NCBI GenBank assembly: GCA_946965045.2
Contig: OX337239.1
Coordinates: forward strand, 1,674,001-1,738,000
Direction of reading: 5' to 3'
Length of the DNA: 64,000 nt
Source of the DNA: Epithemia pelagica
Taxonomy: Eukaryota > Protista > Bacillariophyta
The position numbers and the translations under genes are program-made. Below the pieces are notes generated by a model. The model was not told the origin of the DNA and did not search any database. It saw only the letters and a program-made list of their open reading frames with translations. Shown here piece by piece: positions 31,594 through 57,462 of this stretch. Numbering within the stretch: position 1 is the first letter of the stretch; each line of letters begins with the position of its first letter.

Positions 31594-32375
31594 TGACGAT
31601 GCCTTCAAACACCGCACCAGATATCTCATCGAGCGAACAAACCATATTTCGGGTTGCCATGCTTTCTTCTCTCACTTGTTGTCCTGTTGTGACTGGGCGA
31701 AGTTGACTCCTCTCAGGAAAGGGCCAAGCCGACCTGTACAAGGCTAGGTGCACCATTGCAACTGAGCTTTCTGTTGCCTCATAAGCGCAGTTTGTGATGG
31801 TACGAACGACAATTTGGCTATGGCAGAGAGGTTACGCGACCGTCGAGGTGTTCCGCTGTCTTTGCGAACACTTTCGTGCGATACAGATGTATTGAATTGC
31901 GAGAATCGTTGAAGGACCAAGGAACAAGTCGAAGAAGATGTTGTGCGTGGTGACTATTTGGTCCTGACTAATGTCAATCAGTACGATGTCGCTTGATGTC
32001 AAAGCCGTCTCCATCATCATTCAGTTTTATATCTTTGCTGGATGTAACACTCTATGTGATAGTCATGACTGAGCCTACACTTGATACCCTGCTCTTGATG
32101 CGAACGTTGGCGCATTCATCCCCATGATTGATACCTTTTGCTGGACGTGATTTATTTCTCTAGATTACAAATGAAAAAGTCTCCTTCGCTATATACCGGC
32201 CCTTTTTCTTTGTCTAGAAGTGATCATACTAACATGTGTTGAAGAACCTCGATACTACTCGTAGTATGGGAAGCAAAAGGGGCTCACGAAATAGAAGGCA
32301 GAAATATGATTGGGTTAGAAAACTCACAAGACATAGACAAGACATCAAAATACTTAACGAAAACTCACACAAGAC

Positions 32376-35300
32376 ATGTCTTCTCTTACCAGTAGACATC
32401 GCGCGCCACGCGCAAAAAGCCACGGAATCTTGCCGACTTCCCCACGAAAACAGCCGAAACGACAGGGATTTCGTCTCCAACACGATTCCGTGCCAATGAG
32501 GCCGGTCGCGGTTGCCGTGCCCCAGGACATGGACAATGGTGTCGATGTTTCTGGAGCGACAATGGACCCAACCACGATGACTGTCCCTGAGGAGAATGAC
32601 TCTCCTCCACCACCACCAGCACCCTTGGTGGTGAACCCATACAAAAAGCTCAGCAAGGAGCAAGAGATGGGTGGGCAGAGTCAACAACGAAACAACCAAA
32701 CAAAAAGGGCAAAGTCGTTAGCACAACAGAGAAGCAACAAGAAGAGGAAGCAACAAGAGGCAAAGCAGTTGAGGCAGCTCACGCTTGAGAAGAAAAAGGC
32801 CTTTGAGCCAGACAGGGACTGCACCATCTGCAGTTCCAAAAGGCTTGGGACCAAGCCTCCCAAGCGCCCCCATCACGTCTTCTGCCCGAAGAACACAAAG
32901 ACCAGGGGCATACCAGACCACTTGGTAGAGGCCATGAAGGAGGAGGAACGACTGAAGAAAGAGGCCAACAAGGAAGTGACTTACCATCCAATCATCATGA
33001 GGCAAGAAGATTTCAACCTCTTCTTTCGTCTCAACAATAAACCTGTCTCGGAAGCTTCAAATGAAGCAACGACCGTGACAGAGGACGATTTGAAACTTTC
33101 CAGGGTTCGAAAGGGGAAGCGCAACTGTATTGCGCGCACGGACTGCCTGATCAATAATCAGGTGACGTCCGCCGTTGGGTCCAATGAGTATGTATTTATG
33201 CAATCGGTACTGGCTAAATACAAGGAGATAGAACAAGACGAGTCGATCACGTGTCCGAAAACAATGTACGCGCTTGCCAAGACTATTGCCGAAACTTGTT
33301 TGGAACGGAAGCGCGACGTGCGGTCACTTAAGCCGTTCATGCGAGACATGTGTTTGACTGTACCCGACGTGCGAAACAACAATAATGCCCTGTGGGACTC
33401 AATTGTAGGGCGACGTTTGTACATTGTTGACTGGGAGCTGTTTATGCCGGTGGAGTTTCAGAAAATTGGGCTTAAGTGTCCAAAGTGTAGCAACTGTACA
33501 CTACAACGCGAGCGGACCAACCTTTCCAAGAGCAAAAGTCTATTCCCCATTTTTGGTCTTGATGGCGCACCGTCTTACGCCCTTGTCACGCACTACCATT
33601 GCAAGGAGTGCAATACCACGCATGCCGGCAACGACGGAGCACTTCTCAATTCGCTGCCTCCACATTTTGCGAAATGGTATCCGGTCGAAGCAAAGTGGGC
33701 TCGAGGTGCCCAGCACTTCGACATTACAACAACAACAGTGTTGGAGGAGGAGATGCTTACCTATGGCAATGGTGACCACTGTAGTGGACTATTGTATGCT
33801 GCAATCAACAGGGATTATAGGAATAGAATAACTAACTATTACTCCTTCTGTGATGCAACACATCAGCAAGGGCAAGAGTATCCAGCGAAAGATGGAGAGT
33901 GGCTTACCAGGTATCCTCCTCTTGGTGAGACAATCAGACAGGCCTACCACAAGGCATCAAGATCCAGACTCAATCCCTGGAGAACAAGTGACTATGAGAG
34001 GCACACCAGGGAAATCCAAGCAGTGGGCTGCCAAACAAGTTTTGCCCAAGACCACACCTTCCAAGCAGTCAAGAACTATCCCAAGAGGCTCAAGGCAGAA
34101 GCTGTATGGGATGCTGCCAATGAAGTAGGCGAGATTGCATGTGCAATCTTGGTTCCAAACTTGGAAACCAAGACCTTCTCCCATGCTGCCCAACAACTCT
34201 GCAGCCGTGGAAATTTTAACCCGAGCGTCATCTATTCCGACACATTCCCCCACAAGAGCGATTATTGGGTTGGATTGTTGGGTGAAGATGTAGTCCCAAG
34301 ACTGGGACTCTTTCATTTCCTCCAGCGAATTATAAAGACCCTGCGCCATAAACACATGGACTTTGGTGACGCGTTGCGCAAATTGTTGGATTGCATCTAC
34401 GAGTATCACGATGGTGACTTCCATAAAGTCATCACGGCCCTGAAGAATGGCACCCTTGGAGGCAAGAAATGTAATGACAAGCAAATAGCAGAAATGAGAC
34501 AGACCAAGGTTTTTCGCGAAAGATACGGCAAGTACTTACGGAAAATCATCCGCGCGTTCCAAACAATCGTGATGCGCCTGGAGGAGTGGAAGATAAAATA
34601 TAAAGTGAGAAGTAGTAGTGACAGTGGGCCACCGGCACGAGGAAGGCTCGATCACAAGACACAACAACCATTGTTCACACAAGATACACACTCAGCAATC
34701 GAAAACTGTAAAAAAAAGGCAGAGTTTCTCGCAGATCCGATTCCAATCGAAGACATGTATCGTGAGATCAAACCACACCCAAAATCAAGCCATCAATTTG
34801 TTAGAATTCTCACCGTCTATGGTGGTTAGATTCTACATCTCATCGATTCCCCATGTCACATAGCCTCGTGCTATCGCATCATGCCATCTAGCTTCGAGCT
34901 ATGTTCCCTAGCTTCGCGCTATATCGACCTATATTTCTTCGCAAATCATGAAAAGTGAGAATAGATTGACGAACTCACTCTCAAGACTAAACTGGGTCGT
35001 GCGGTATTACAACGGACGTAAATTTGGCCGTTGCTCGGACATTATACTAACGCCCTAAGCGTACGCGCCCGAAATCATCGAGCGCGCCCAAGCGACATCC
35101 GAGCGCTGTCGGCATCTATCCGACCCAACGGTCTAAGTATCCCAAGCACGACACACGATCACGCGAGACCATATTTCCATTCCCACAATCTCCAAATTGT
35201 CAACAAGCTGCGCGCCATGAAAACAACTATGCCAACCCAAAGCAAGAGCTGTTGACCTTGTATATGTTATCCGTCCACATATACATGTCATATACATCAC

Positions 35301-36607
35301 ATGAATTGACTCCAACTATTCCAAACCTGTTGCCGCCAAGAACCTATGACACATGACCCTTGGCAGGACCGAACATTTCACGTAGACCTATCGTAGTAAT
35401 CAACACACAATCTAACAATATCACCATTTATCACATCTCCTTTTGTGTCCCGACTATCCTTCTGATAGACTTCGACTTGCTTGCTTCTCTGACCCTGAGA
35501 AGCTTGTATCGGTTGGTGACCTACCTGATTGTCTGCTCTACCGAGCATCAATGTCCCTACGATTCAGAAAGAATTGTAACACAATTGTCCGAATGGGTCT
35601 CTTACCAAGGGGAATCCAAATTGGAGTCATGGCACAACAACTTGGCCCATTTCAGTAATGGGGGCACAAATGAAAAACTCTCGGACGACTTGAACTTGTG
35701 CGGAACAGCGCGGTACAACCGTCAGATTCAACACAAGCTGCGCTTTGTGTCGAAGACAACGGAACAACGCAACAAGAAAATGCCTGCGGCGTGGGAAACA
35801 GTGGTGAGTCATTGGAACCACCAGCAACTTGCCTTTATCAACAAGTTGGCCGTTCGATGCGGCGCATCCAAGTTGTTTGATGACGTCGAGCACTTACCGC
35901 AAGACAATGGTGAACGCTTTTTTTCTGAGTACTTGCAAGTTTATGAGCAACTCAACGAGGTCTGGAACATCTCGGTCCAACAGCATGACTTCTGTCCCTG
36001 TGAGAAATGTGAGGCTCAGCGCAATATGCAAGATGAAGAAACAATGCAAACAAGCGAGACACTGGAACAACAAGATACAGAACAATCACGAGAAAATGAA
36101 AAAGAGCAACAAGTTGAGGAAAAAGAAGAGCATCAAGACGAAGCAAACCAAGAAGATGACGATGATCCAATGTTGAGTGATGAGGAGGAAGAGCTGCCGC
36201 CACCACCAGCTCCAACAGTGCAACAGTCTTCTCCAACACGACCACAACGACCACCACCACAAACACAACAGCAACCTGCTCCCAAATCGCCACCAAGAAC
36301 AGCAATACAACCGGCCCCCAGACCAATCACCATGCCACAACCACAAATGCCATCACTTCCACCATTGCTTCCGCCAAATACGCCGCTTGCTAGTGTTCAT
36401 CACTTTCAGCAACAGCTGCTGCAGCAAGCGGCGTATTACTCGTCGTACCTTGGTTGCCAACCGCTCCATCAACAACCAACACATCCACAACCGACTCAAA
36501 ATTGTTGCATCCGCAATATTCAGTATTGGCAGAGGCCCAATCGTCGGGGCATCCCACCCCATGACAAATCTTGTTCCAACCATCCCAGTAATGCATCGTA
36601 CCCTTAA
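32376..36607 (+). pseudogene. Interrupted DDE transposase (MULE-like catalytic pattern), copy 1; reconstitutes to 1147 aa
   Basis: 32376-34798 joined to 35587-36607 is 3444 nt with no stop. D in FAQDHTF (34050), D in IYSDTF (34239), H in LGLFH, E in GESKLESWH (35624). Several Cys/His zinc motifs. Confidence 0.75.
34799..35581. mobile_element. 783-bp solo-LTR-like insertion (also 39754-40536, 44709-45491, 49664-50446; 3'-truncated from 54619)
   Basis: Termini TGTTA...TAACA and a 5-bp target duplication CAATT (34794-34798, 35582-35586). Excision restores the codons CAT CAA TTG TCC GAA TGG (HQLSEW). Confidence 0.85.
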
Positions 36608-37330
36608 AACACAACAACAACATCGGTTAGAGAGCAGCAAAAATCAACACAGCATCAACAGCCAACAGTCGCAACTTACCATGGAGGCCAGACACTTTAA
36701 GACAAAGATTCAAGAGATATAACAACAACAACGACGACAACAACAACAGTAGTGAGAAAACCATCGATCAGAAAATAATGAACTAACAAAAACTGTGCAA
36801 AACTTCTCGTCCATGCCGTAGCTATGATTGCGCGATATACTGGAAACAATGTATGCCAATATCTTCGCACAGGCAATACAATCAGAGATCAAAGGCATAT
36901 GTGAGGCTGACGATGTTTTGTATAGGTAAAAGACACACGGTGTCAGCACTTACCGTAGCCAGATACGTAGAACGACCGTAGGGAACTGCCAAATCCCCCT
37001 CCACCGGGACATTGGAGCAACACGTAGTCACCACACATCCCACACAGACCAGAAGCAGTGACAAATGGATCAACCAATGAGATCATAATATGATGGTGGC
37101 AATCGCACGTTCGTAGCAAAGGGAATCTTACCACTAATTCTTCCTCTTTTTTCTTTTTTCCTTCTTCTTCTTCTTTTTTCTCTTCCTTTCTTTCCCCTCC
37201 TCTTCTGCGACTTCCCCCTATAAAGTCGCAAAAGGGGCTCACGAAATAGAAGGCAGAAATATGATTGGGTTAGAAAACTCACAAGACATAGACAAGACAT
37301 CAAAATACTTAACGAAAACTCACACAAGAC

Positions 37331-40300
37331 ATGTCTTCTCTTACCAGTAGACATCGCGCGCCACGCGCAAAAAGCCACGGAATCTTGCCGACTTCCCCAC
37401 GAAAACAGCCGAAACGACAGGGATTTCGTCTCCAACACGATTCCGTGCCAATGAGGCCGGTCGCGGTTGCCGTGCCCCAGGACATGGACAATGGTGTCGA
37501 TGTTTCTGGAGCGACAATGGACCCAACCACGATGACTGTCCCTGAGGAGAATGACTCTCCTCCACCACCACCAGCACCCTTGGCGGTGAACCCATACAAA
37601 AAGCTCAGCAAGGAGCAAGAGATGGGTGGGCAGAGTCAACAACGAAACAACCAAACAAAAAGGGCAAAGTCGTTAGCACAACAGAGAAGCAACAAGAAGA
37701 GGAAGCAACAAGAGGCAAAGCAGTTGAGGCAGCTCACGCTTGAGAAGAAAAAGGCCTTTGAGCCAGACAGGGACTGCACCATCTGCAGTTCCAAAAGGCT
37801 TGGGACCAAGCCTCCCAAGCGCCCCCATCACGTCTTCTACCCGAAGAACACAAAGACCAGGGGCATACCAGACCACTTGGTAGAGGCCATGAAGGAGGAG
37901 GAACGACTGAAGAAAGAGGCCAACAAGGAAGTGACTTACCATCCAATCATCATGAGGCAAGAAGATTTCAACCTCTTCTTTCGTCTCAACAATAAACCTG
38001 TCTCGGAAGCTTCAAATGAAGCAACGACCGTGACAGAGGACGATTTGAAACTTTCCAGGGTTCGAAAGGGGAAGCGCAACTGTATTGCGCGCACGGACTG
38101 CCTGATCAATAATCAGGTGACGTCCGCCGTTGGGTCCAATGAGTATGTATTTATGCAATCGGTACTGGCTAAATACAAGGAGATAGAACAAGACGAGTCG
38201 ATCACGTGTCCGAAAACAATGTACGCGCTTGCCAAGACTATTGCCGAAACTTGTTTGGAACGGAAGCGCGACGTGCGGTCACTTAAGCCGTTCATGCGAG
38301 ACATGTGTTTGACTGTACCCGACGTGCGAAACAACAATAATGCCCTGTGGGACTCAATTGTAGGGCGACGTTTGTACATTGTTGACTGGGAGCTGTTTAT
38401 GCCGGTGGAGTTTCAGAAAATTGGGCTTAAGTGTCCAAAGTGTAGCAACTGTACACTACAACGCGAGCGGACCAACCTTTCCAAGAGCAAAAGTCTATTC
38501 CCCATTTTTGGTCTTGATGGCGCACCGTCTTACGCCCTTGTCACGCACTACCATTGCAAGGAGTGCAATACCACGCATGCCGGCAACGACGGAGCACTTC
38601 TCAATTCGCTGCCTCCACATTTTGCGAAATGGTATCCGGTCGAAGCAAAGTGGGCTCGAGGTGCCCAGCACTTCGACATTACAACAACAACAGTGTTGGA
38701 GGAGGAGATGCTTACCTATGGCAATGGTGACCACTGTAGTGGACTATTGTATGCTGCAATCAACAGGGATTATAGGAATAGAATAACTAACTATTACTCC
38801 TTCTGTGATGCAACACATCAGCAAGGGCAAGAGTATCCAGCAAAAGATGGAGAGTGGCTTACCAGGTATCCTCCTCTTGGTGAGACAATCAGACAGGCCT
38901 ACCACAAGGCATCAAGATCCAGACTCAATCCCTGGAGAACAAGTGACTATGAGAGGCACACCAGGGAAATCCAAGCAGTGGGCTGCCAAACAAGTTTTGC
39001 CCAAGACCACACCTTCCAAGCAGTCAAGAACTATCCCAAGAGGCTCAAGGCAGAAGCTGTATGGGATGCTGCCAATGAAGTAGGCGAGATTGCATGTGCA
39101 ATCTTGGTTCCAAACTTGGAAACCAAGACCTTCTCCCATGCTGCCCAACAACTCTGCAGCCGTGGAAATTTTAACCCGAGCGTCATCTATTCCGACACAT
39201 TCCCCCACAAGAGCGATTATTGGGTTGGATTGTTGGGTGAAGATGTAGTCCCAAGACTGGGACTCTTTCATTTCCTCCAGCGAATTATAAAGACCCTGCG
39301 CCATAAACACATGGACTTTGGTGACGCGTTGCGCGAATTGTTGGATTGCATCTACGAGTATCACGATGGTGACTTCCATAAAGTCATCACGGCCCTGAAG
39401 AATGGCACCCTTGGAGGCAAGAAATGTAATGACAAGCAAATAGCAGAAATGAGACAGACCAAGGTTTTTTGCGAAAGATACGGCAAGTACTTACGGAAAA
39501 TCATCCGCGCGTTCCAAACAATCGTGATGCGCCTGGAGGAGTGGAAGATAAAATATAAAGTGAGAAGTAGTAGTGACAGTGGGCCACCGGCACGAGGAAG
39601 GCTCGATCACAAGACACAACAACCATTGTTCACACAAGATACACACTCAGCAATCGAAAACTGTAAAAAAAAGGCAGAGTTTCTCGCAGATCCGATTCCA
39701 ATCGAAGACATGTATCGTGAGATCAAACCACACCCAAAATCAAGCCATCAATTTGTTAGAATTCTCACCGTCTATGGTGGTTAGATTCTACATCTCATCG
39801 ATTCCCCATGTCACATAGCCTCGTGCTATCGCATCATGCCATCTAGCTTCGAGCTATGTTCCCTAGCTTCGCGCTATATCGACCTATATTTCTTCGCAAA
39901 TCATGAAAAGTGAGAATAGATTGACGAACTCACTCTCAAGACTAAACTGGGTCGTGCGGTATTACAACGGACGTAAATTTGGCCGTTGCTCGGACATTAT
40001 ACTAACGCCCTAAGCGTACGCGCCCGAAATCATCGAGCGCGCCCAAGCGACATCCGAGCGCTGTCGGCATCTATCCGACCCAACGGTCTAAGTATCCCAA
40101 GCACGACACACGATCACGCGAGACCATATTTCCATTCCCACAATCTCCAAATTGTCAACAAGCTGCGCGCCATGAAAACAACTATGCCAACCCAAAGCAA
40201 GAGCTGTTGACCTTGTATATGTTATCCGTCCACATATACATGTCATATACATCACATGAATCGACTCCAACTATTCCAAACCTGTTGCCGCCAAGAACCT

Positions 40301-41562
40301 ATGACACATGACCCTTGGCAGGACCGAACATTTCACGTAGACCTATCGTAGTAATCAACACACAATCTAACAATATCACCATTTATCACATCTCCTTTTG
40401 TGTCCCGACTATCCTTCTGATAGACTTCGACTTGCTTGCTTCTCTGACCCTGAGAAGCTTGTATCGGTTGGTGACCTACCTGATTGTCTGCTCTACCGAG
40501 CATCAATGTCCCTACGATTCAGAAAGAATTGTAACACAATTGTCCGAATGGGTCTCTTACCGAGGGGAATCCAAATTGGAGTCATGGCACAACAACTTGG
40601 CCCATTTCAGTAATGGGGGCACAAATGAAAAACTCTCGGACGACTTGAACTTGTGCGGAACAGCGCGGTACAACCGTCAGATTCAACACAAGCTGCGCTT
40701 TGTGTCAAAGACAACGGAACAACGCAACAAGAAAATGCCTGCGGCGTGGGAAACAGTGGTGAGTCATTGGAACCACCAGCAACTTGCCTTTATCAACAAG
40801 TTGGCCGTTCGATGCGGCGCATCCAAGTTGTTTGATGACGTCGAGCACTTACCGCAAGACAATGGTGAACGCTTTTTTTCTGAGTACTTGCAAGTTTATG
40901 AGCAACTCAACGAGGTCTGGAACATCTCGGTCCAATAGCATGACTTCTGTTCCTGTGAGAAATGTGAGGCTCAGCGCAATATGCAAGATGAAGAAACAAT
41001 GCAAACAAGCGAGACACTGGAACAACAAGATACAGAACAATCACGAGAAAATGAAAAAGAGAAACAAGTTGAGGAAAAAGAAGAGCATCAAGACGAAGCA
41101 AACCAAGAAGATGACGATGATCCAATGTTGAGTGATGAGGAGGAAGAGCTGCCGCCACCACCAGCTCCAACAGTGCAACAGTCTTCTCCAACACGACCAC
41201 AACGACCACCACCACAAACACAACAGCAACCTGCTCCCAAATCGCCACCAAGAACAGCAATACAACCGGCCCCCAGACCAATCACCATGCCACAACCACA
41301 AATGCCATCACTTCCACCATTGCTTCCGCCAAATACGCCGCTTGCTAGTGTTCATCACTTTCAGCAACAGCTGCTGCAGCAAGCGGCGTATTACTCGTCG
41401 TACCTTGGTTGCCAACCTCTCCATCAACAACCAACACATCCACAACCGACTCAAAATTGTTGCATCCGCAATATTCAGTATTGGCAGAGGCCCAATCGTC
41501 GGGGCATCCCACCCCATGACAAATCTTGTTCCAACCATCCCAGTAATGCATCGTACCCTTAA
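37331..41562 (+). pseudogene. Interrupted transposase, copy 2, with an extra nonsense codon
   Basis: Same LTR-like insert, plus CAG>TAG at 40936-40938. Confidence 0.75.
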
Positions 41563-42285
41563 AACACAACAACAACATCGGTTAGAGAGCAGCAAAAATC
41601 AACACAGCATCAACAGCCAACAGTCGCGACTTACCATGGAGGCCAGACACTTTAAGACAAAGATTCAAGAGATATAACAACAACAACGACGACAACAACA
41701 ACAGTAGTGAGAAAACCATCGATCAGAAAATAATGAACTAACAAAAACTGTGCAAAACTTCTCATCCATGCCGTAGCTATGATTGCGCGATATACTGGAA
41801 ACAATGTATGCCAATATCTTCGCACAGGCAATACAATCAGAGATCAAAGGCATATGTGAGGCTGACGATGTTTTGTATAGGTAAAAGACACACGGTGTCA
41901 GCACTTACCGTAGCCAGATACGTAGAACGACCGTAGGGAACTGCCAAATCCCCCTCCACCGGGACATTGGAGCAACACGTAGTCACCACACATCCCACAC
42001 AGACCAGAAGCAGTGACAAATGGATCAACCAATGAGATCATAATATGATGGTGGCAATCGCACGTTCGTAGCAAAGGGAATCTTACCACTAATTCTTCCT
42101 CTTTTTTCTTTTTTCCTTCTTCTTCTTCTTTTTTCTCTTCCTTTCTTTCCCCTCCTCTTCTGCGACTTCCCCCTATAAAGTCGCAAAAGGGGCTCACGAA
42201 ATAGAAGGCAGAAATATGATTGGGTTAGAAAACTCACAAGACATAGACAAGACATCAAAATACTTAACGAAAACTCACACAAGAC

Positions 42286-47240: not shown

Positions 47241-50200
47241 ATGTCTTCTCTTACCAGTAGACATCGCGCGCCACGCGCAAAAAGCCACGGAATCTTGCCG
47301 ACTTCCCCACGAAAACAGCCGAAACGACAGGGATTTCGTCTCCAACACGATTCCGTGCCAATGAGGCCGGTCGCGGTTGCCGTGCCCCAGGACATGGACA
47401 ATGGTGTCGATGTTTCTGGAGCGACAATGGACCCAACCACGATGACTGTCCCTGAGGAGAATGACTCTCCTCCACCACCACCAGCACCCTTGGTGGTGAA
47501 CCCATACAAAAAGCTCAGCAAGGAGCTAGAGATGGGTGAGCAGAGTCAACGACGAAACAACCAAACAAAAAGGGCAAAGTCGTTAGCACAACAGAGAAGC
47601 AACAAGAAGAGGAAGCAACAAGAGGCAAAGCAGTTGAGGCAGCTCACGCTTGAGAAGAAAAAGGCCTTTGAGCCAGACAGGGACTGCACCATCTGCAGTT
47701 CCAAAAGGCTTGGGACCAAGCCTCCCAAGCGCCCCCATCACGTCTTCTGCCCGAAGAACACAAAGACCAGGGGCATACCAGACCACTTGGTAGAGGCCAT
47801 GAAGGAGGAGGAACGACTGAAGAAAGAGGCCAACAAGGAAGTGACTTACCATCCAATCATCATGAGGCAAGAAGATTTCAACCTCTTCTTTCGTCTCAAC
47901 AATAAACCTGTCTCGGAAGCTTCAAATGAAGCAACGACCGTGACAGAGGACGATTTGAAACTTTCCAGGGTTCGAAAGGGGAAGCGCAACTGTATTGCGC
48001 GCACGGACTGCCTGATCAATAATCAGGTGACGTCCGCCGTTGGGTCCAATGAGTATGTATTTATGCAATCGGTACTGGCTAAATACAAGGAGATAGAACA
48101 AGACGAGTCGATCACGTGTCCGAAAACAATGTACGCGCTTGCCAAGACTATTGCCGAAACTTGTTTGGAACGGAAGCGCGACGTGCGGTCACTTAAGCCG
48201 TTCATGCGAGACATGTGTTTGACTGTACCCGACGTGCGAAACAACAATAATGCCCTGTGGGACTCAATTGTAGGGCGACGTTTGTACATTGTTGACTGGG
48301 AGCTGTTTATGCCGGTGGAGTTTCAGAAAATTGGGCTTAAGTGTCCAAAGTGTAGCAACTGTACACTACAACGCGAGCGGACCAACCTTTCCAAGAGCAA
48401 AAGTCTATTCCCCATTTTTGGTCTTGATGGCGCACCGTCTTACGCCCTTGTCACGCACTACCATTGCAAGGAGTGCAATACCACGCATGCCGGCAACGAC
48501 GGAGCACTTCTCAATTCGCTGCCTCCACATTTTGCGAAATGGTATCCGGTCGAAGCAAAGTGGGCTCGAGGTGCCCAGCACTTCGACATTACAACAACAA
48601 CAGTGTTGGAGGAGGAGATGCTTACCTATGGCAATGGTGACCACTGTAGTGGACTATTGTATGCTGCAATCAACAGGGATTATAGGAATAGAATAACTAA
48701 CTATTACTCCTTCTGTGATGCAACACATCAGCAAGGGCAAGAGTATCCAGCGAAAGATGGAGAGTGGCTCACCAGGTATCCTCCTCTTGGTGAGACAATC
48801 AGACAGGCCTACCACAAGGCATCAAGATCCAGACTCAATCCCTGGAGAACAAGTGACTATGAGAGGCACACCAGGGAAATCCAAGCAGTGGGCTGCCAAA
48901 CAAGTTTTGCCCAAGACCACACCTTCCAAGCAGTCAAGAACTATCCCAAGAGGCTCAAGGCAGAAGCTGTATGGGATGCTGCCAATGAAGTAGGCGAGAT
49001 TGCATGTGCAATCTTGGTTCCAAACTTGGAAACCAAGACCTTCTCCCATGCTGCCCAACAACTCTGCAGCCGTGGAAATTTTAACCCGAGCGTCATCTAT
49101 TCCGACACATTCCCCCACAAGAGCGATTATTGGGTTGGATTGTTGGGTGAAGATGTAGTCCCAAGACTGGGACTCTTTCATTTCCTCCAGCGAATTATAA
49201 AGACCCTGCGCCATAAACACATGGACTTTGGTGACGCGTTGCGCGAATTGTTGGATTGCATCTACGAGTATCACGATGGTGACTTCCATAAAGTCATCAC
49301 GGCCCTGAAGAATGGCACCCTTGGAGGCAAGAAATGTAATGACAAGCAAATAGCAGAAATGAGACAGACCAAGGTTTTTCGCGAAAGATACGGCAAGTAC
49401 TTACGGAAAATCATCCGCGCGTTCCAAACAATCGTGATGCGCCTGGAGGAGTGGAAGATAAAATATAAAGTGAGAAGTAGTAGTGACAGTGGGCCACCGG
49501 CACGAGGAAGGCTCGATCACAAGACACAACAACCATTGTTCACACAAGATACACACTCAGCAATCAAAAACTGTAAAAAAAAGGCAGAGTTTCTCGCAGA
49601 TCCGATTCCAATCGAAGACATGTATCGTGAGATCAAACCACACCCAAAATCAAGCCATCAATTTGTTAGAATTCTCACCGTCTATGGTGGTTAGATTCTA
49701 CATCTCATCGATTCCCCATGTCACATAGCCTCGTGCTATCGCATCATGCCATCTAGCTTCGAGCTATGTTCCCTAGCTTCGCGCTATATCGACCTATATT
49801 TCTTCGCAAATCATGAAAAGTGAGAATAGATTGACGAACTCACTCTCAAGACTAAACTGGGTCGTGCGGTATTACAACGGACGTAAATTTGGCCGTTGCT
49901 CGGACATTATACTAACGCCCTAAGCGTACGCGCCCGAAATCATCGAGCGCGCCCAAGCGACATCCGAGCGCTGTCGGCATCTATCCGACCCAACGGTCTA
50001 AGTATCCCAAGCACGACACACGATCACACGAGACCATATTTCCATTCCCACAATCTCGAAATTGTCAACAAGCTGCGCGCCATGAAAACAACTATGCCAA
50101 CCCAAAGCAAGAGCTGTTGACCTTGTATATGTTATCCGTCCACATATACATGTCATATACATCACATGAATCGACTCCAACTATTCCAAACCTGTTGCCG

Positions 50201-51472
50201 CCAAGAACCTATGACACATGACCCTTGGCAGGACCGAACATTTCACGTAGACCTATCGTAGTAATCAACACACAATCTAACAATATCACCATTTATCACA
50301 TCTCCTTTTGTGTCCCGACTATCCTTCTGATAGACTTCGACTTGCTTGCTTCTCTGACCCTGAGAAGCTTGTATCGGTTGGTGACCTACTTGATTGTCTG
50401 CTCTACCGAGCATCAATGTCCCTACGATTCAGAAAGAATTGTAACACAATTGTCCGAATGGGTCTCTTACCGAGGGGAATCCAAATTGGAGTCATGGCAC
50501 AACAACTTGGCCCATTTCAGTAATGGGGGCACAAATGAAAAACTCTCGGACGACTTGAACTTGTGCGGAACAGCGCGGTACAACCGTCAGATTCAACACA
50601 AGCTGCGCTTTGTGTCAAAGACAACGGAACAACGCAACAAGAAAATGCCTGCGGCGTGGGAAACAGTGGTGAGTCATTGGAACCACCAGCAACTTGCCTT
50701 TATCAACAAGTTGGCCGTTCGATGCGGCGCATCCAAGTTGTTTGATGACGTCGAGCACTTACCGCAAGACAATGGTGAACGCTTTTTTTCTGAGTACTTG
50801 CAAGTTTATGAGCAACTCAACGAGGTCTGGAACATCTCGGTCCAACAGCATGACTTCTGTCCCTGTGAGAAATGTGAGGCTCAGCGCAATATGCAAGATG
50901 AAGAAACAATGCAAACAAGCGAGACACTGGAACAACAAGATACAGAACAATCACGAGAAAATGAAAAAGAGCAACAAGTTGAGGAAAAAGAAGAGCATCA
51001 AGACGAAGCAAACCAAGAAGATGACGATGATCCAATGTTGAGTGATGAGGAGGAAGAGCTGCCGCCACCACCAGCTCCAACAGTGCAACAGTCTTCTCCA
51101 ACACGACCACAACGACCACCACCACAAACACAACAGCAACCTGCTCCCAAATCGCCACCAAGAACAGCAATACAACCGGCCCCCAGACCAATCACCATGC
51201 CACAACCACAAATGCCATCACTTCCACCATTGCTTCCGCCAAATACGCCGCTTGCTAGTGTTCATCACTTTCAGCAACAGCTGCTGCAGCAAGCGGCGTA
51301 TTACTCGTCGTACCTTGGTTGCCAACCGCTCCATCAACAACCAACACATCCACAACCGACTCAAAATTGTTGCATCCGCAATATTCAGTATTGGCAGAGG
51401 CCCAATCGTCGAGGCATCCCACCCCATGACAAATCTTGTTCCAACCATCCCAGTAATGCATCGTACCCTTAA
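47241..51472 (+). pseudogene. Interrupted transposase, copy 4
   Basis: Same structure as copy 1. Confidence 0.75.
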
Positions 51473-52195
51473 AACACAACAACAACATCGGTTAGAGAGC
51501 AGCAAAAATCAACACAGCATCAACAGCCAACAGTCGCGACTTACCATGGAGGCCAGACACTTTAAGACAAAGATTCAAGAGATATAACAACAACAACGAC
51601 GACAACAACAACAGTAGTGAGAAAACCATCGATCAGAAAATAATGAACTAACAAAAACTGTGCAAAACTTCTCGTCCATGCCGTAGCTATGATTGCGCGA
51701 TATACTGGAAACAATGTATGCCAATATCTTCGCACAGGCAATACAATCAGAGATCAAAGGCATATGTGAGGCTGACGATGTTTTGTATAGGTAAAAGACA
51801 CACGGTGTCAGCACTTACCGTAGCCAGATACGTAGAACGACCGTAGGGAACTGCCAAATCCCCCTCCACCGGGACATTGGAGCAACACGTAGTCACCACA
51901 CATCCCACACAGACCAGAAGCAGTGACAAATGGATCAACCAATGAGATCATAATATGATGGTGGCAATCGCACGTTCGTAGCAAAGGGAATCTTACCACT
52001 AATTCTTCCTCTTTTTTCTTTTTTCCTTCTTCTTCTTCTTTTTTCTCTTCCTTTCTTTCCCCTCCTCTTCTGCGACTTCCCCCTATAAAGTCGCAAAAGG
52101 GGCTCACGAAATAGAAGGCAGAAATATGATTGGGTTAGAAAACTCACAAGACATAGACAAGACATCAAAATACTTAACGAAAACTCACACAAGAC

Positions 52196-55100
52196 ATGTC
52201 TTCTCTTACCAGTAGACATCGCGCGCCACGCGCAAAAAGCCACGGAATCTTGCCGACTTCCCCACGAAAACAGCCGAAACGACAGGGATTTCGTCTCCAA
52301 CACGATTCCGTGCCAATGAGGCCGGTCGCGGTTGCCGTGCCCCAGGACATGGACAATGGTGTCGATGTTTCTGGAGCGACAATGGACCCAACCACGATGA
52401 CTGTCCCTGAGGAGAATGACTCTCCTCCACCACCACCAGCACCCTTGGTGGTGAACCCATACAAAAAGCTCAGCAAGGAGCAAGAGATGGGTGGGCAGAG
52501 TCAACAACGAAACAACCAAACAAAAAGGGCAAAGTCGTTAGCACAACAGAGAAGCAACAAGAAGAGGAAGCAACAAGAGGCAAAGCAGTTGAGGCAGCTC
52601 ACGCTTGAGAAGAAAAAGGCCTTTGAGCCAGACAGGGACTGCACCATCTGCAGTTCCAAAAGGCTTGGGACCAAGCCTCCCAAGCGCCCCCATCACGTCT
52701 TCTGCCCGAAGAACACAAAGACCAGGGGCATACCAGACCACTTGGTAGAGGCCATGAAGGAGGAGGAACGACTGAAGAAAGAGGCCAACAAGGAAGTGAC
52801 TTACCATCCAATCATCATGAGGCAAGAAGATTTCAACCTCTTCTTTCGTCTCAACAATAAACCTGTCTCGGAAGCTTCAAATGAAGCAACGACCGTGACA
52901 GAGGACGATTTGAAACTTTCCAGGGTTCGAAAGGGGAAGCGGAACTGTATTGCGCGCACGGACTGCCTGATCAATAATCAGGTGACGTCCGCCGTTGGGT
53001 CCAATGAGTATGTATTTATGCAATCGGTACTGGCTAAATACAAGGAGATAGAACAAGACGAGTCGATCACGTGTCCGAAAACAATGTACGCGCTTGCCAA
53101 GACTATTGCCGAAACTTGTTTGGAACGGAAGCGCGACGTGCGGTCACTTAAGCCGTTCATGCGAGACATGTGTTTGACTGTACCCGACGTGCGAAACAAC
53201 AATAATGCCCTGTGGGACTCAATTGTAGGGCGACGTTTGTACATTGTTGACTGGGAGCTGTTTATGCCGGTGGAGTTTCAGAAAATTGGGCTTAAGTGTC
53301 CAAAGTGTAGCAACTGTACACTACAACGCGAGCGGACCAACCTTTCCAAGAGCAAAAGTCTATTCCCCATTTTTGGTCTTGATGGCGCACCGTCTTACGC
53401 CCTTGTCACGCACTACCATTGCAAGGAGTGCAATACCACGCATGCCGGCAACGACGGAGCACTTCTCAATTCGCTGCCTCCACATTTTGCGAAATGGTAT
53501 CCGGTCGAAGCAAAGTGGGCTCGAGGTGCCCAGCACTTCGACATTACAACAACAACAGTGTTGGAGGAGGAGATGCTTACCTATGGCAATGGTGACCACT
53601 GTAGTGGACTATTGTATGCTGCAATCAACAGGGATTATAGGAATAGAATAACTAACTATTACTCCTTCTGTGATGCAACACATCAGCAAGGGCAAGAGTA
53701 TCCAGCGAAAGATGGAGAGTGGCTTACCAGGTATCCTCCTCTTGGTGAGACAATCAGACAGGCCTACCACAAGGCATCAAGATCCAGACTCAATCCCTGG
53801 AGAACAAGTGACTATGAGAGGCACACCAGGGAAATCCAAGCAGTGGGCTGCCAAACAAGTTTTGCCCAAGACCACACCTTCCAAGCAGTCAAGAACTATC
53901 CCAAGAGGCTCAAGGCAGAAGCTGTATGGGATGCTGCCAATGAAGTAGGCGAGATTGCATGTGCAATCTTGGTTCCAAACTTGGAAACCAAGACCTTCTC
54001 CCATGCTGCCCAACAACTCTGCAGCCGTGGAAATTTTAACCCGAGCGTCATCTATTCCGACACATTCCCCCACAAGAGCGATTATTGGGTTGGATTGTTG
54101 GGTGAAGATGTAGTCCCAAGACTGGGACTCTTTCATTTCCTCCAGCGAATTATAAAGACCCTGCGCCATAAACACATGGACTTTGGTGACGCGTTGCGCG
54201 AATTGTTGGATTGCATCTACGAGTATCACGATGGTGACTTCCATAAAGTCATCACGGCCCTGAAGAATGGCACCCTTGGAGGCAAGAAATGTAATGACAA
54301 GCAAATAGCAGAAATGAGACAGACCAAGGTTTTTTGCGAAAGATACGGCAAGTACTTACGGAAAATCATCCGCGCGTTCCAAACAATCGTGATGCGCCTG
54401 GAGGAGTGGAAGATAAAATATAAAGTGAGAAGTAGTAGTGACAGTGGGCCACCGGCACGAGGAAGGCTCGATCACAAGACACAACAACCATTGTTCACAC
54501 AAGATACACACTCAGCAATCGAAAACTGTAAAAAAAAGGCAGAGTTTCTCGCAGATCCGATTCCAATCGAAGACATGTATCGTGAGATCAAACCACACCC
54601 AAAATCAAGCCATCAATTTGTTAGAATTCTCACCGTCTATGGTGGTTAGATTCTACATCTCATCGATTCCCCATGTCACATAGCCTCGTGCTATCGCATC
54701 ATGCCATCTAGCTTCGAGCTATGTTCCCTAGCTTCGCGCTATATCGACCTATATTTCTTCGCAAATCATGAAAAGTGAGAATAGATTGACGAACTCACTC
54801 TCAAGACTAAACTGGGTCGTGCGGTATTACAACGGACGTAAATTTGGCCGTTGCTCGGACATTATACTAACGCCCTAAGCGTACGCGCCCGAAATCATCG
54901 AGCGCGCCCAAGCGACATCCGAGCGCTGTCGGCATCTATCCGACCCAACGGTCTAAGTATCCCAAGCACGACACACGATCACGCGAGACCATATTTCCAT
55001 TCCCACAATCTACAAATTGTCAACAAGCTGCGCGCCATGAAAACAACTATGCCAACCCAAAGCAAGAGCTGTTGACCTTGTATATGTTATCCGTCCACAT

Positions 55101-55972
55101 ATACATGTCATATACATCACATGAATCGACTCCAACTATTCCAAACCTGTTGCCGCCAAGAACCTATGACACATGACCCTTGGCAGGACCAAACATTTCA
55201 CGTAGACCTATCGTAGTAATCAACACACAATCTAACAATATCACCATTTATCACATCTCCTTTTGTGTCCCGACTATCCTTTTGATAGACTTCGACTTGC
55301 TTGCTTCTCTGACCCTGAGAAGCTTGTATCGGTTGGTGACCTACCTGATTGTCTGCTCTACCGAGCATCAAATGTGAGGCTCAGCGCAATATGCAAGATG
55401 AAGAAACAATGCAAACAAGAGAGACACTGGAACAACAAGATACAGAACAATCACGAGAAAATGAAAAAGAGCAACAAGTTGAGGAAAAAGAAGAGCATCA
55501 AGACGAAGCAAACCAAGAAGATGACGATGATCCAATGTTGAGTGATGAGGAGGAAGAGCTGCCGCCACCACCAGCTCCAACAGTGCAACAGTCTTCTCCA
55601 ACACGACCACAACGACCACCACCACAAACACAACAGCAACCTGCTCCCAAATCGCCACCAAGAACAGCAATACAACCGGCCCCCAGACCAATCACCATGC
55701 CACAACCACAAATGCCATCACTTCCACCATTGCTTCCGCCAAATACGCCGCTTGCTAGTGTTCATCACTTTCAGCAACAGCTGCTGCAGCAAGCGGCGTA
55801 TTACTCGTCGTACCTTGGTTGCCAACCTCTCCATCAACAACCAACACATCCACAACCGACTCAAAATTGTTGCATCCGCAATATTCAGTATTGGCAGAGG
55901 CCCAATCGTCGAGGCATCCCACCCCATGACAAATCTTGTTCCAACCATCCCAGTAATGCATCGTACCCTTAA
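52196..55972 (+). pseudogene. Interrupted transposase, copy 5, with a 455-bp deletion
   Basis: The junction GCATCAAATGTGAGG near 55370 removes the LTR 3' end and the GESKLESWH segment. Confidence 0.75.
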
Positions 55973-56329
55973 AACACAACAACAACATCGGTTAGAGAGC
56001 AGCAAAAATCAACACAGCATCAACAGCCAACAGTCGCGACTTACCATGGAGGCCAGACACTTTAAGACAAAGATTCAAGAGATATAACAACAACAACGAC
56101 GACAACAACAACAGTAGTGAGAAAACCATCGATCAGAAAATAATGAACTAACAAAAACTGTGCAAAACTTCTCGTCCATGCCGTAGCTATGATTGCGCGA
56201 TATACTGGAAACAATGTATGCCAATATCTTCGCACAGGCAATACAATCAGAGATCAAAGGCATATGTGAGGCTGACGATGTTTTGTATAGGTAAAAGACA
56301 CACGGTGTCAGCACTTACCGTAGTAAATC

Positions 56330-56541
56330 TACTTTAATAGCCAGGGTGGGACGAGGAGGAGCTAGGGTGTGAGGAGTGGCTTAACTCCGAGAAGGGCAAT
56401 AGCGACGAGGAGTGGAATGCCCCTGTGAGATCCGCTTAAGCGGATCGAGGGGGCAGTCCACGACAAGAAGCTATTGCCCGACGAGGAGTTAAGCCACGAG
56501 GAGCGCCCTGCGACGAGGAGTCCCCCGGGGCTATTAAAGTA
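56330..56541 (+). other. ~210-nt rod-like fold-back with six stems and purine-rich internal loops
   Basis: Perfect stems at 56330-42/56529-41 (13 bp), 56376-88/56485-97 (13 bp), 56394-403/56470-79 (10 bp) and 56429-35/56440-46 (7 bp), plus two imperfect stems. Confidence 0.85.
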
Positions 56542-56836
56542 TGTTAGCTTCCTTTGTCACGAGGAGTCGTGCCAGCGCGCTCTAGTTATTAATCGGTCTT
56601 CCTAAGTGATCGGTACTCTTAATGTATACTTAGTACTCGTGAGCCTAATTAGTCTTAGAGAATTAGGCTGGCCATACTCATGATGGCGCAATAGGTAATC
56701 TTTAATCCTTTGTAAATAACCCGGTCACTTAAGGGATCACATACAACTATATCGGATGACTTATAACGCTCAATGTCTAAGTATCATTCGTCCCACAATT
56801 ATTGCATGCCAATCAAACTCCGAGGCGTGCTTGTTC

Positions 56837-56844
56837 TATAAATA
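56837..56844 (+). promoter_or_regulatory. Candidate TATA box within the insertion
   Basis: TATAAATA, followed about 50 nt later by an (ACA/CA)-rich leader-like tract and a GTAAGT donor consensus at 57006. Confidence 0.35.
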
Positions 56845-57462
56845 CTCAAGCAGAATACTTATAGTCAATGTTCCCCATTTCCCACTCCGACTGATACAAC
56901 AACACAACACACAACACAGACACAGCACCAACAATAACCAACACCTACTTTTTCGTTTCCCGGGCTAATCTAGATTAATACACTAAATCAAAATATCCAT
57001 GTACAGTAAGTTTTGGGGCTTAGGTAGTGTGAGCGTGGGGAGTGACCCACTCCTCAGTGAGTGGGAAGGGCACGACGACGGTAGAACGACGAGTGATAAA
57101 GGTAGCCAGATACGTAGAACGACCGTAGGGAACTGCCAAATCCCCCTCCACCGGGACATTGGAGCAACACGTAGTCACCACACATCCCACACAGACCAGA
57201 AGCAGTGACAAATGGATCAACCAATGAGATCATAATATGATGGTGGCAATCGCACGTTCGTAGCAAAGGGAATCTTACCACTAATTCTTCCTCTTTTTTC
57301 TTTTTTCCTTCTTCTTCTTCTTTTTTCTCTTCCTTTCTTTCCCCTCCTCTTCTGCGACTTCCCCCTATAAAGTCGCAAAAGGAGAGATAGAATCGATTCA
57401 GTGAGAACGCCGGTCAGACGGATTTCTCGCCGATTTGCTTGTCGCGGCCGGAGACTTCGACC

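Follow-up and report, generated by a model that had tools for sequence, protein, structure and literature searches.

The window, a 64,000-nt stretch of the Epithemia pelagica genome, contains an array of five head-to-tail units that are best explained as copies of an autonomous 4.16-kb DNA transposon from a raphid pennate diatom. The best reading of its 1107-aa product is a DDE transposase that folds like RNase H and contains a large helical insertion domain along with several zinc clusters. The transposon belongs to a large, unannotated family devoid of terminal inverted repeats (TIRs), whose members very often lie tail-to-head, exactly 6 bp apart. This spacing suggests that the enzyme joins a right end beside a left end in the manner of certain bacterial insertion sequences.

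Organization of the Array

The anatomy of the array is read directly from the assembly. The 8-mer GCAAAAGG starts on the + strand at 32273, 37228, 42183, 47138, 52093, and 57375, which are all six array boundaries. It occurs eight times in the window, where 2.65 ± 1.57 occurrences are expected and 0/100 shuffles reach eight or more. The boundaries are spaced by 4955 bp (four times) and 5282 bp (once), and the five-unit array with GCAAAAGG at 6/6 boundaries claimed in the original prediction is thus confirmed. The features of the array are as follows.

32273..57382, + strand: whole array, spacer-(element-spacer)x5 plus GG after the last spacer
32273..32278, + strand: left flank and spacer GCAAAA, followed by element GGGG
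32279..37227, + strand: unit 1, 4949 bp, GGGGCTCACG...CTATAAAGTC
32376-34829, + strand: unit 1 ORF1, 817 aa, with both catalytic D residues
35360-36607, + strand: unit 1 ORF2, with the E helix
37228..37233, + strand: spacer GCAAAA between units 1 and 2
37234..42182, + strand: unit 2, 4949 bp; ORF1 37331-39784
42183..42188, + strand: spacer GCAAAA between units 2 and 3
42189..47137, + strand: unit 3, 4949 bp; ORF1 42286-44739, ORF2 45270-46517
47138..47143, + strand: spacer GCAAAA between units 3 and 4
47144..52092, + strand: unit 4, 4949 bp; ORF1 47241-49694, ORF2 50225-51472
52093..52098, + strand: spacer GCAAAA between units 4 and 5
52099..57374, + strand: unit 5, 5276 bp; ORF1 52196-54649
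56324..57101, + strand: 778-bp insertion, in unit 5 only, with GTAG on each side
57375..57380, + strand: right flank and last spacer GCAAAA, followed by host-flank GG (in agreement with the RG rule described below)

The units are 99.6-99.8% identical, with 11-19 substitutions per pair, and unit 1 shares 98.6-99.5% identity with 4161-bp copies from ERZ21939226. The unit ends, GGCTCACG... and ...CTATAAAGTC, are exact and common to at least 10 other copies; the left end of unit 4 reads GGGGCTCGCG, with one substitution. Units 1-4 are colinear. Unit 5 differs by the 778-bp insertion and by a 455-bp deletion at the microhomology AATGT (junction near 55371), and in unit 2 the C-terminal frame is further broken into 40315-40938 and 40981-41562. 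Long identical repeats are prone to assembly error, although nothing specific indicates that the five units here were generated from only one or two real ones. Such an artefact is hardly credible, given the private substitutions in every unit, the private indels in unit 5, and the recurrence of this architecture at two loci in an independent assembly, the contigs of which seem to be named in the style of a long-read assembler.

Element Ends

The ends of the family are asymmetric, with GGGG...AAGGCAG...TGATTGG on the left and C-runs...ATAAAGTC on the right. When the terminal 60 nt of the window element are aligned in inverted orientation, the score is 9, compared with 9.5 ± 1.7 for shuffles. 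The same search found no TIR in 13 relatives, whose scores equal those of shuffles, and the absence of TIRs proposed earlier therefore extends to 14 family members. The left terminus begins GGGGC..., and its GGGG is kept in family-2 and metagenome relatives. It opens a short module.

32279..32314, + strand: left-end module GGGG-N-AAGGCAG-N-TGATTGG

TGATTGG sits at position 29-30 in 14/14 elements, and this conserved module is likely a transposase binding site.

Spacer, Flanks, and the Empty Site

The original prediction took GCAAAAGG for an 8-bp target sequence duplicated on insertion (TSD). It is instead a 6-bp spacer, GCAAAA, followed by the GG of the element's own GGGG left terminus, and it is missing from the orthologous empty site. 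The single real empty allele found, in a 98%-identical genome, reads ...GTATGGGAA ATGGGG AGAGATAG..., whereas the cleanly rejoined empty site described earlier is hypothetical only. GCAAAA is thus present on both outer sides of the window array and absent from the orthologous empty allele. The surroundings of the empty site are rich in indels.

Flanks of the same element elsewhere also speak against GCAAAAGG as a target. Perfectly matching flank hexamers occur at 2/8 insertions of the 98-99%-identical element and in 1/13 complete distant relatives, whose flanks are mostly unrelated to each other, and therefore the element makes no regular, fixed-length, perfect TSD. Position by position, the flank hexamers of the window element match at 32/48 positions (15.5 ± 3.9 expected, p about 1e-4). 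Right flanks follow the pattern N6+RG (8/9, p 2e-7), which resembles the N6+GGGG of the left end. Across the sampled loci, no hexamer is common to different loci.

These flanks bear on the idea that a circle or concatemer with a right end-GCAAAA-left end junction, produced by rolling-circle-like replication or derived from another array, was integrated with its hexamer included. Tn916-type elements carry coupling sequences, which such a hexamer would resemble. The empty allele has ATGGGG and not GCAAAA(GG), the hexamer may have come with the DNA, and GCAAAA stands at both outer edges. Flank behavior is also like that of Replitron-1 (RG target, parental flank on right ends, variable TSDs; PMC10288648). 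However, the enzyme described below is of the DDE class and lacks HUH/GYxxK Rep motifs or a tyrosine-recombinase fold. The 11-19 SNPs between units and their recombinant patterns rule out a recent concatemeric origin of the array. Integration of a carried multimer also predicts hexamers common to loci, of which the sampled loci have none, and in an indel-rich region the mismatch of the empty allele may be an unrelated polymorphism. Overall, this origin, a form of which the original prediction also listed, is possible but distinctly unlikely.

Transposase

The protein of the array units is a DDE transposase, a class assignment observed directly in its conserved residues. In an alignment of 46 sequences (27-67% identity; numbering of P0023), D519, D582, and E777/E781 are invariant, and zinc clusters accompany them. 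In unit 1 these residues map as follows.

34050..34052, + strand: codon of the first catalytic Asp, D519 (AQDHTF), at the end of beta-1 in the model
34239..34241, + strand: codon of the second catalytic Asp, D582 (YSDTF)
35612..35626, + strand: E-S-K-L-E helix motif with E777/E781, which holds the catalytic Glu, downstream of a solo LTR

AF2 models (pLDDT 92.8 and 94.3) give an RNase H fold with canonical topology, in the order b1-b2-b3-a1-b4-a2-b5, insertion domain, E helix. In these models, D519 lies on b1, D582 on b4, and E777/E781 on the C-terminal helix. The top PDB structural match in Foldseek is the copy-out/paste-in transposase of ISCth4, an IS256 family member (332/346 core residues, E 7e-4, prob 1.0), although the match is distant, with a TM of about 0.4 and 9% identity. 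Retroviral integrase cores follow; they align over about 170-215 columns, compared with 332-360 for ISCth4, whose likeness may thus reach past the RNase H core, although its TM is only about 0.4 at E 7e-4. The invariant D-D-E in 46 sequences, the RNase H fold, and ISCth4 as the best structural match bear out the DDE enzyme first proposed.

Neither the cores nor full-length members match the Pfam IS256, Transposase_mut, or MULE models even at E<=10, and a PDB sequence search with the family profile returned no match. The HUH Rep motif set (SUTU, HUQ/HUH, GYxxK) is absent from P0023. Other identities were rejected. For a Replitron (HUH Rep), the conserved columns are DDE residues and Cys clusters within an RNase H-like fold. 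For a Crypton, which would have the R-H-R-Y catalytic domain of a tyrosine recombinase, no integrase-family Pfam or tyrosine recombinase fold matches, and the core is DDE. Helitrons encode a RepHel protein, have 5'-TC...CTRR-3' ends and insert between A and T; this element lacks a helicase or Rep domain and has ends GGGGC.../...AAAGTC.

A Dead Founder and Exchange Between Units

Each unit carries the same nested solo LTR.

34799..35581, + strand: solo LTR in unit 1, 783 bp, TGTTAG...GTAACA
39754-40536, 44709-45491, and 49664-50446, + strand: same solo LTR insertion in units 2-4
54619-~55370, + strand: truncated solo LTR in unit 5

Its termini match in inverted orientation at 11/12 positions, and in unit 1 it is bounded by the 5-bp TSD CAATT (34794-34798 and 35582-35586). 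It is 80% similar to 709-bp direct repeats that bound a 6-kb element in locus L001. The solo LTR with its TSD is found in every one of the five units, whereas the 4161-bp copies and the other copies examined all lack it. It splits the transposase gene, leaving the two catalytic D residues on one side and the E on the other. Because all five units share this insertion, the array expanded in place from a single founder that was already dead. Five independent insertions at the same site, as had been suggested, are consequently unlikely.

Shared SNPs across the units follow the patterns 00110, 00101, 01001, 01100, 11000, and 10100, which are mutually incompatible with any tree. This mosaic is a direct record of exchange between array units. 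Whole-unit exchange did shape the array, but unequal exchange seeded at 8-bp repeats, as proposed earlier, fails to account for the X-T-X-T-Y arrangement and hetero-junctions described next.

Recurrent Right End-6 bp-Left End Junctions

The junction is seen repeatedly beyond the window. L005 reads GGCCTC-T-GGCCTC-T-GGGAAT, that is, X-T-X-T-Y, and ctg1356l has at least five units with CATATA as every spacer and units 2-4 identical. In L001/L010, the right end of a 51%-identical paralogue lies exactly 6 bp plus GG before a window-type element. Among metagenome contigs, about 13/26 right ends continue as N6 and then a left end, and the contigs with two full copies are hetero-tandems joining different family members (3/3). 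Homo-junctions in short-read contigs could come from either circles or arrays. In L038, as in three arrays, the spacer is identical to the left flank, and there are about 13 further 6-bp junctions. It equals both outer flanks in the window but not in L005, for an element without a regular TSD. The original prediction held that dispersed copies with unrelated flanks and no tandems would point to local duplication only. The outcome is the other way round, with both dispersed copies with other flanks and other tandems in existence.

These junctions weigh on a purely host-driven origin, in which a solo insertion with a perfect 6-8-bp flank repeat was duplicated by slippage or unequal exchange, with no role for the transposase. 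For the window taken alone, TSD-seeded duplication is possible: it fits the presence of X on either side of the array, a founder that was already dead, and the recombinant patterns of the SNPs, and microhomology-mediated events such as the AATGT deletion in unit 5 do occur in the array. However, it can yield neither X-T-X-T-Y, nor junctions that join elements which are 51% identical or cannot be aligned, nor a constant 6-bp spacing in about 13 independent junctions. Three arrays or tandems in about 11 loci of one family also exceed chance 6-8-bp seeding. The observed hetero-junctions refute this origin for the family, and overall it is very improbable.

A second possibility is that a cut-and-paste copy inserted into the TSD of the first, giving X-T-X-T-X, and that unequal exchange then expanded the dimer. 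X stands at both outer flanks and every junction of the window array, the hexamer matches (32/48) are far over chance, and the mosaic SNPs reflect unequal exchange or conversion. The same route is documented for the Drosophila P element and hobo (PMC5932611). Nevertheless, double insertion is unlikely. Perfect hexamers are confined to 2/8 insertions and 1/13 complete relatives, and the hexamer is missing from the empty allele. About 50% of right ends lie in junctions, including hetero-tandems, a frequency far higher than repeated use of an N6+RG target would produce. Since the founder was dead by then, units 3-5 at least did not arise by insertion. To reach this junction frequency, double insertion would need resident ends to be specifically targeted, which restates the preferred explanation.

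Proposed Mechanism

The preferred explanation, which static junctions lead us to hold with roughly even confidence, is that the family transposase makes the junction, either by joining an end to a flank in the IS256/IS30 manner or by inserting at a resident end, after which host recombination expands the array. An LTR element would have entered one copy at this site and been reduced to a solo LTR, with the D residues and the E left on opposite sides. Most likely, the first duplication would then have relied on transposase provided in trans by the family, and we infer both this provision and the joining chemistry. The right-end 3'-OH would be joined 6 bp upstream of the resident left end; equivalently, an incoming copy would insert at the hexamer abutting that end. 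The product would be a right end followed by a 6-bp copy of the left flank and then a GGGG left end. Gene conversion and ordinary unequal exchange between sister chromatids, acting on the 5-kb units, would subsequently produce five copies with shuffled SNPs. Unequal exchange alone cannot be the source of the hetero-junctions and X-T-X-T-Y. The presence of GCAAAA on both sides, yet not in the empty allele, is not predicted by end joining without extra assumptions, such as a spacer that came in with the incoming DNA, a footprint, or polymorphism local to the indel-rich stretch.

Comparison With Known Systems

The behavior is unusual for a DDE element, as was anticipated. IS30 and IS911 target their own ends, and MULEs are eukaryotic relatives of IS256. 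The IS256 family is among the closest systems: it has the nearest solved fold (DDE plus a helical insertion domain), ends that abut across about 6 bp copied from one end's flank, and tandem dimers. Junctions of ISCth4/IS256 have 6-8-bp spacers copied from the recipient-end flank, integration is best with a 6-bp spacer, and tandem dimers form (PMC7780238). However, IS256 elements are bacterial, with an enzyme of about 400 aa, clear TIRs, clean 8-bp TSDs, and either end as donor. The diatom family has a eukaryotic host, a 1107-aa protein with zinc clusters, no TIRs or regular TSDs, a spacer that always equals the left side, and no sequence-level match. It likewise lacks both the TIRs and the clean TSDs of copy-out/paste-in insertion sequences, as well as the TIRs and 8-10-bp TSD of IS256/MULE elements.

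IS3-type and IS30-type enzymes, like IS256-type ones, join an end to a flank and produce figure-eights, circles, and tandem dimers. In (IS30)2, joining or insertion beside a resident end gives dimers arranged head to tail across a short spacer of constant length, as in the diatom. These dimers differ in that they have a 2-3 bp spacer, are unstable reactive intermediates, and require TIRs, whereas the diatom junctions are persistent and heritable.

Among eukaryotic elements, active MULEs are present in diatoms. In Phaeodactylum, the MULE has TIRs of about 200 bp and TSDs of 9 bp, and MULE and SWIM domains are predicted in it; the family lacks all of these. P-element and hobo form X-T-X-T-X tandems, with a hobo array estimated at 13-19 copies (McGurk and Barbash, 2018; PMC5932611). 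They share a eukaryotic DDE enzyme, a TSD-length spacer, and expansion by unequal exchange (PMC5932611) but have TIRs and perfect 8-bp TSDs, and their tandems are rare variants. The diatom family, by contrast, has irregular TSDs, common hetero-tandems, and about half of its right ends in junctions.

Replitron-1 of Chlamydomonas also lacks TIRs and has an orientation-specific RG relation and variable or imperfect duplications (Craig, 2023; PMC10288648). Its right ends can carry parental flank (PMC10288648). In the diatom, an RG follows the right-flank hexamer in 8/9 cases, with imperfect flanks, but the GG belongs to the left terminus, and no parental flank was traced. The Replitron-1 enzyme is a Y1 HUH Rep, whereas the diatom protein has a DDE RNase H fold without Rep motifs. 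KolobokP is another eukaryotic DDE element that occurs as multimers, and its paper raises the copy-out analogy; its units have long terminal direct repeats in common, and TSDs are present. Membership in KDZ (Kyakuja-Dileera-Zisupton) was rejected because no KDZ catalytic-domain match was found. The likeness to KDZ/Zisupton lies in the zinc region, as a weak, sub-threshold similarity to the CxC5 zinc cluster (E 0.006-0.035) and DUF6729 (best 7.8e-6, 5/46 members).

Structure of the array and its nested LTR

The array consists, as the original prediction described, of five units separated by GCAAAAGG, an 8-mer found at six boundaries spaced 4955 bp apart four times and 5282 bp once. Eight copies of it lie in the window in total, against 2.65 ± 1.57 expected.

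Window 32273, 37228, 42183, 47138, 52093, and 57375, + strand: six boundary 8-mers, GCAAAAGG
Window 40315-41562: C-terminal frame of unit 2, further split into 207 and 193 aa (units 1, 3, and 4 keep 415 aa)
Window 56324-57101: 778-bp insertion private to unit 5, GTAG on both sides

Pairwise, the units differ by 11-19 substitutions; units 1-4 are colinear, and ORF1 (817 aa) is an intact frame in all five. Unit 5 carries a 455-bp deletion with the microhomology AATGT. Its 778-bp insertion has an imperfect internal inverted repeat, no TIR visible by eye, and no match among the other fetched loci. Each unit has private differences, which argues against an assembly artefact, the outcome named at the outset as fatal to the array. 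The shared-SNP patterns (00110, 00101, 01001, 01100, 11000, and 10100) fit no single tree, which shows that the units have recombined with one another.

Many dispersed copies of the array's element are present in ERZ21939226, an ENA assembly with contigs of up to 2.2 Mb and naming that resembles long-read assembler output. Its flanks are 98.4-98.6% identical to those of the window. The element measures 4161 bp there (GGGGCTCACG...CTATAAAGTC) and encodes a single 1107-aa ORF. Window units reach 4949 bp because each holds a 783-bp insertion with TG...CA ends, a terminal inverted match of 11/12, and a 5-bp duplication, CAATT. The 709-bp direct repeats at the ends of a 6-kb element in ERZ21939226 are 80% similar to this insertion, which is therefore a solo LTR. 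An intron or MITE was considered; GT-AG boundaries are absent, and the LTR features fit instead.

L001:1808-7854, allelic in L010: ~6-kb element with 709-bp direct terminal repeats and the 5-bp TSD TTCGA, inserted in a paralogous transposase gene

The 1088-aa ORF of this 6-kb element has no Pfam domains, and neither RT nor integrase was detected in it. The solo LTR lies between the two catalytic aspartates, in ORF1 (817 aa), and the glutamate, in the ORF2 frame. It occurs with an identical TSD in 5/5 units but is missing from every other copy examined, so the five units descend from one copy that was already defective. With one LTR and TSD common to all units, repeated insertion at the same site, five times over, is very unlikely.

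The transposase

An exhaustive protein search returned 1235 clusters at 50% identity (E ≤ 1e-3), and no relative among those checked carries a name. Pfam matches to the transposase are sub-threshold only and fall in the zinc-cluster region (DUF6729 and CxC5 of KDZ transposases). Across a 46-sequence alignment, D519, D582, and E777/E781 (numbered on the intact 1107-aa protein) are invariant, as are the CxxC...CxxC and CxCxxC clusters. Confident AlphaFold models (pLDDT 92.8 and 94.3) predict the strand order of RNase H, with the aspartates ending beta-1 and beta-4 and the glutamate on a helix after a helical insertion of ~150 residues. A Foldseek search of the PDB ranks the ISCth4 transposase (IS256 family) first, over 332/346 core residues (E 7e-4, probability 1.0), followed by retroviral integrase cores. 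Together, the invariant D/D/E residues, the RNase H-like models, and this ranking establish that the DDE label given from the sequence alone is correct. On the models, the closest solved relative would be ISCth4, a copy-out/paste-in enzyme, yet one far removed. A profile search of PDB sequences gave zero matches, and MULE, IS256, and KDZ catalytic models do not match the transposase.

The RG rule and imperfect flanks described below suggested a Replitron/HUH element. HUH/GYxxK Rep motifs are absent from the transposase, and protein motifs and fold exclude this reading. A Crypton or tyrosine recombinase with Tn916-like coupling sequences was also rejected, because the search for a YR domain found none; from it, only the idea that a hexamer is carried along survives, as a possible account of mismatched flanks.

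Ends, flanks, and target

The absence of TIRs was borne out in 14 complete elements (the array's and 13 relatives at 43-50% identity), whose terminal 60 nt show inverted similarity equal to that of shuffled controls. A right-subterminal CCAATGA was considered as a hidden inverted repeat and dropped, its conservation being lost in distant members. The left end is conserved and asymmetric, with (R/G)GGG, AAGGCAG, and then TGATTGG at position 29-30 (14/14), and the right end has two C-runs followed by ATAAA(A/G)T(C/T). A copy of a related element, family-2, in L004 (61% protein identity to the intact transposase P0023) likewise starts with GGGGC. Because GGGG is conserved at the left terminus across the family, the GG of the 8-mer belongs to the element; the supposed 8-bp target GCAAAAGG is a variable hexamer plus the element's own GG.

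The family-2 copy is itself rearranged:

L004:5573-9785: first ~370 bp (+) abut its own right terminus (-)

The junction reads right end, CTAACA, GG..., and the left end of the main element adjoins the truncated 5' region. The arrangement resembles what an intramolecular, auto-integration-like event would leave.

Table. 8-mers to the left and right of the array's element (nine rows; L001 and L010 are one site)
Locus; left; right
Window; GCAAAAGG; GCAAAAGG
L003; CTGTCAGG; CTGTCAAG
L009; TAAGTAGG; CAAGTAAG
L010; AGCCGGGG; AGACGGAG
L001 (site of L010); AGCCGGGG; AGAAGGAG
L011; TCAATAGG; GTAATAGA
L004; AGAGGAGG; GAAGGAAG
L005 (outer flanks of a two-copy tandem); GGCCTCGG; GGGAATGG
L002; AAAAAGGG; TTTGGAAG

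Left and right hexamers agree at 32/48 positions (15.5 ± 3.9 in permuted pairs, p ~1e-4). Only 2/8 pairs are perfect, and mismatches concentrate 5'. Since the element copies are 98.5-99.5% identical, decay is ruled out as the cause. The flanks are not ordinary TSDs. The search for empty sites and other insertions, proposed with the original prediction, yielded both, but with flanks that mostly match imperfectly. In the 13 complete distant relatives, hexamer agreement is near chance (~27/78 by the author's reading of the table), reaching 6/6 only at L038, a metagenome locus. RG follows the right-flank hexamer in 8/9 cases (background 0.11, p 2e-7) and in 4/8 non-junction metagenome cases (p 0.007), so the insertion site resembles N6 plus the start of a left end. 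No hexamer that could trace a carried-in sequence is shared among the nine sampled loci.

The empty site

An empty allele in ERZ21939226, L012, places the flanking genes 2.26 kb apart, versus 27.3 kb in the window. The flanks had been expected to rejoin cleanly; instead, the site reads ...GTATGGGAA ATGGGG AGAGATAG..., and both GCAAAA and the full 8-mer are absent from it. The hexamer may have come in with the element, L012 may hold a footprint, or the difference may be an unrelated polymorphism. The last is possible because the adjacent 75 bp on the left (L012:12140-12225 versus window 32190-32263) contain two 6-bp indels (CTACAC and TACTCC) and a GA/AG change. With divergence of ~1.5% elsewhere between L012 and the window, this stretch is a local hotspot of small rearrangements.

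Window 32134-32141, - strand: inverted GCAAAAGG (+ strand reads CCTTTTGC), 132 bp before the array

This inverted copy is also found in L012. The chance of one such 8-mer within ±150 bp is ~1% by the author's estimate from background; it could be a coincidence or a template for the hexamer missing from the empty site.

Origin of the junctions and the array

Similar junctions recur elsewhere. L005 holds two copies in the layout GGCCTC-T-GGCCTC-T-GGGAAT (T, transposon), in which the spacer matches the left flank only; a search for a second haplotype or empty allele returned the same contig only. The end of contig ctg1356l carries five or more copies; its left flank and all junctions read CATATA, and units 2-4 are mutually identical. 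At L001, and at the allelic L010, a 51%-identical paralogue precedes the element: its right end (...CCCCCCCCATTTTC, in register with ...CCCCCTATAAAGTC) lies exactly 6 bp plus GG away. Relatives were located at 80 metagenome loci via a 9-sequence alignment, and ~13/26 of the right ends recoverable there lead through 6 bp into a left end. Each of the three contigs with two full copies is a hetero-tandem whose copies share essentially no DNA similarity; at L038, TGAGAA lies left of copy 1 and again between it and a different member. Because a k-mer assembler cannot invent a hexamer-spanning junction, the sampled DNA does contain these junctions, whether in chromosomal tandems or in circles. No circle signature (terminal self-overlap ≥20 nt) was found in the metagenome contigs.

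Unequal exchange at the 6-8-bp repeat, among the origins first proposed, holds for the array only as recombination between units, which the SNP patterns show. It is rejected as the origin of junctions because it can neither give differing outer flanks (X-T-X-T-Y), as at L005, nor join unrelated family members. The window layout is compatible with simple double insertion into a TSD, a route demonstrated for P and hobo (PMC5932611). Only with targeting of the resident left ends themselves would it fit the irregular flanks and the junction frequency.

An end-to-flank reaction of the ISCth4/IS256 type fits best. In those elements, attack by the 3'-OH of one end falls on the flank of the other, at a fixed distance of 6-8 bp, and the junction spacer is copied from the attacked flank, giving circles and tandem dimers; a 6-bp spacer is best for integration (PMC7780238). 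In the diatom element, the donor role would fall to the right end every time, and that of recipient to a left end, real or pseudo (N6+RG...); these fixed roles would match its asymmetric ends. If the 6-nt 5' flaps of a cleaved junction escaped removal and were ligated into the 6-nt gaps at the target, mixed flanks could result, one target-derived and the other donor-derived. Partial trimming of the flaps would produce 5'-biased mismatches.

For the window array, a founder junction made by transposase acting in trans, followed by host-mediated expansion, is the preferred reading, at about even odds. More tentative, and on balance doubtful, is the wider proposal of an undescribed eukaryotic TIR-less DDE superfamily that moves by, or at least retains, asymmetric IS256/IS3/IS30 end-to-flank strand transfer, with the right end transferred to a point 6 bp upstream of a left end, whether a real one or a pseudo end that begins RG. 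If true, such transfer would account for the N6+RG target rule, for arrays that run head to tail, for hetero-tandems, and for flanks in which donor- and target-derived hexamers are mixed in place of clean TSDs. No eukaryotic DNA transposon would have been shown on a copy-out/paste-in pathway before.

Relation to known elements

TE tandem arrays with short spacers are already known (PMC5932611), as are IS dimers (PMC7780238). Neither the diatom transposase protein family nor any TIR-less DDE family whose members systematically join head to tail across 6 bp turned up in the searchable literature. To our knowledge, and as far as that literature shows, eukaryotic DDE transposons have TIRs, make clean TSDs, and move by cut-and-paste, and only in bacteria has a copy-out/paste-in route through junction intermediates been shown. 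Eukaryotic DDE multimers are known from KolobokP. Unlike the usual eukaryotic DDE transposons, this widespread family of 1235 clusters at 50% identity would break all three rules and build arrays of itself. Eukaryotes would thereby gain a further transposition mode, and transposons a direct path to becoming tandem or satellite DNA. The 1000-aa "hypothetical proteins" left unannotated in diatom genomes and in metagenomes of microbial mats would, as a class, be accounted for. Annotation pipelines for TEs that look for TIR/TSD signatures will be misled by arrays and junctions of this kind. The window array is a by-product; the interest rests in the behaviour of the family.

Genomic context

The window is densely packed with long, intron-free ORFs and has no tRNA or Rfam matches. 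The gene directly upstream of the array has its closest named relatives in Epithemia, Amphora, Craspedostauros, and Mayamaea, which places the host among the raphid pennate diatoms. Other repeats and mobile-element genes lie in the window and near element copies in ERZ21939226:

L009:2116-8657, - strand: two 1021-aa genes in tandem, 3476 bp apart, differing at 8 bases
L011:4869-8723, - strand: 1284-aa ORF with a hAT dimerisation domain, ~1 kb upstream of an element copy
Window 11382-11721: 168-bp unit in two tandem copies, 98% identity

The L009 genes have a weak GIY-YIG match (E 8e-4) and may be another tandemly duplicated mobile element of this genome. From the hAT ORF beside the L011 copy, TEs appear to cluster.
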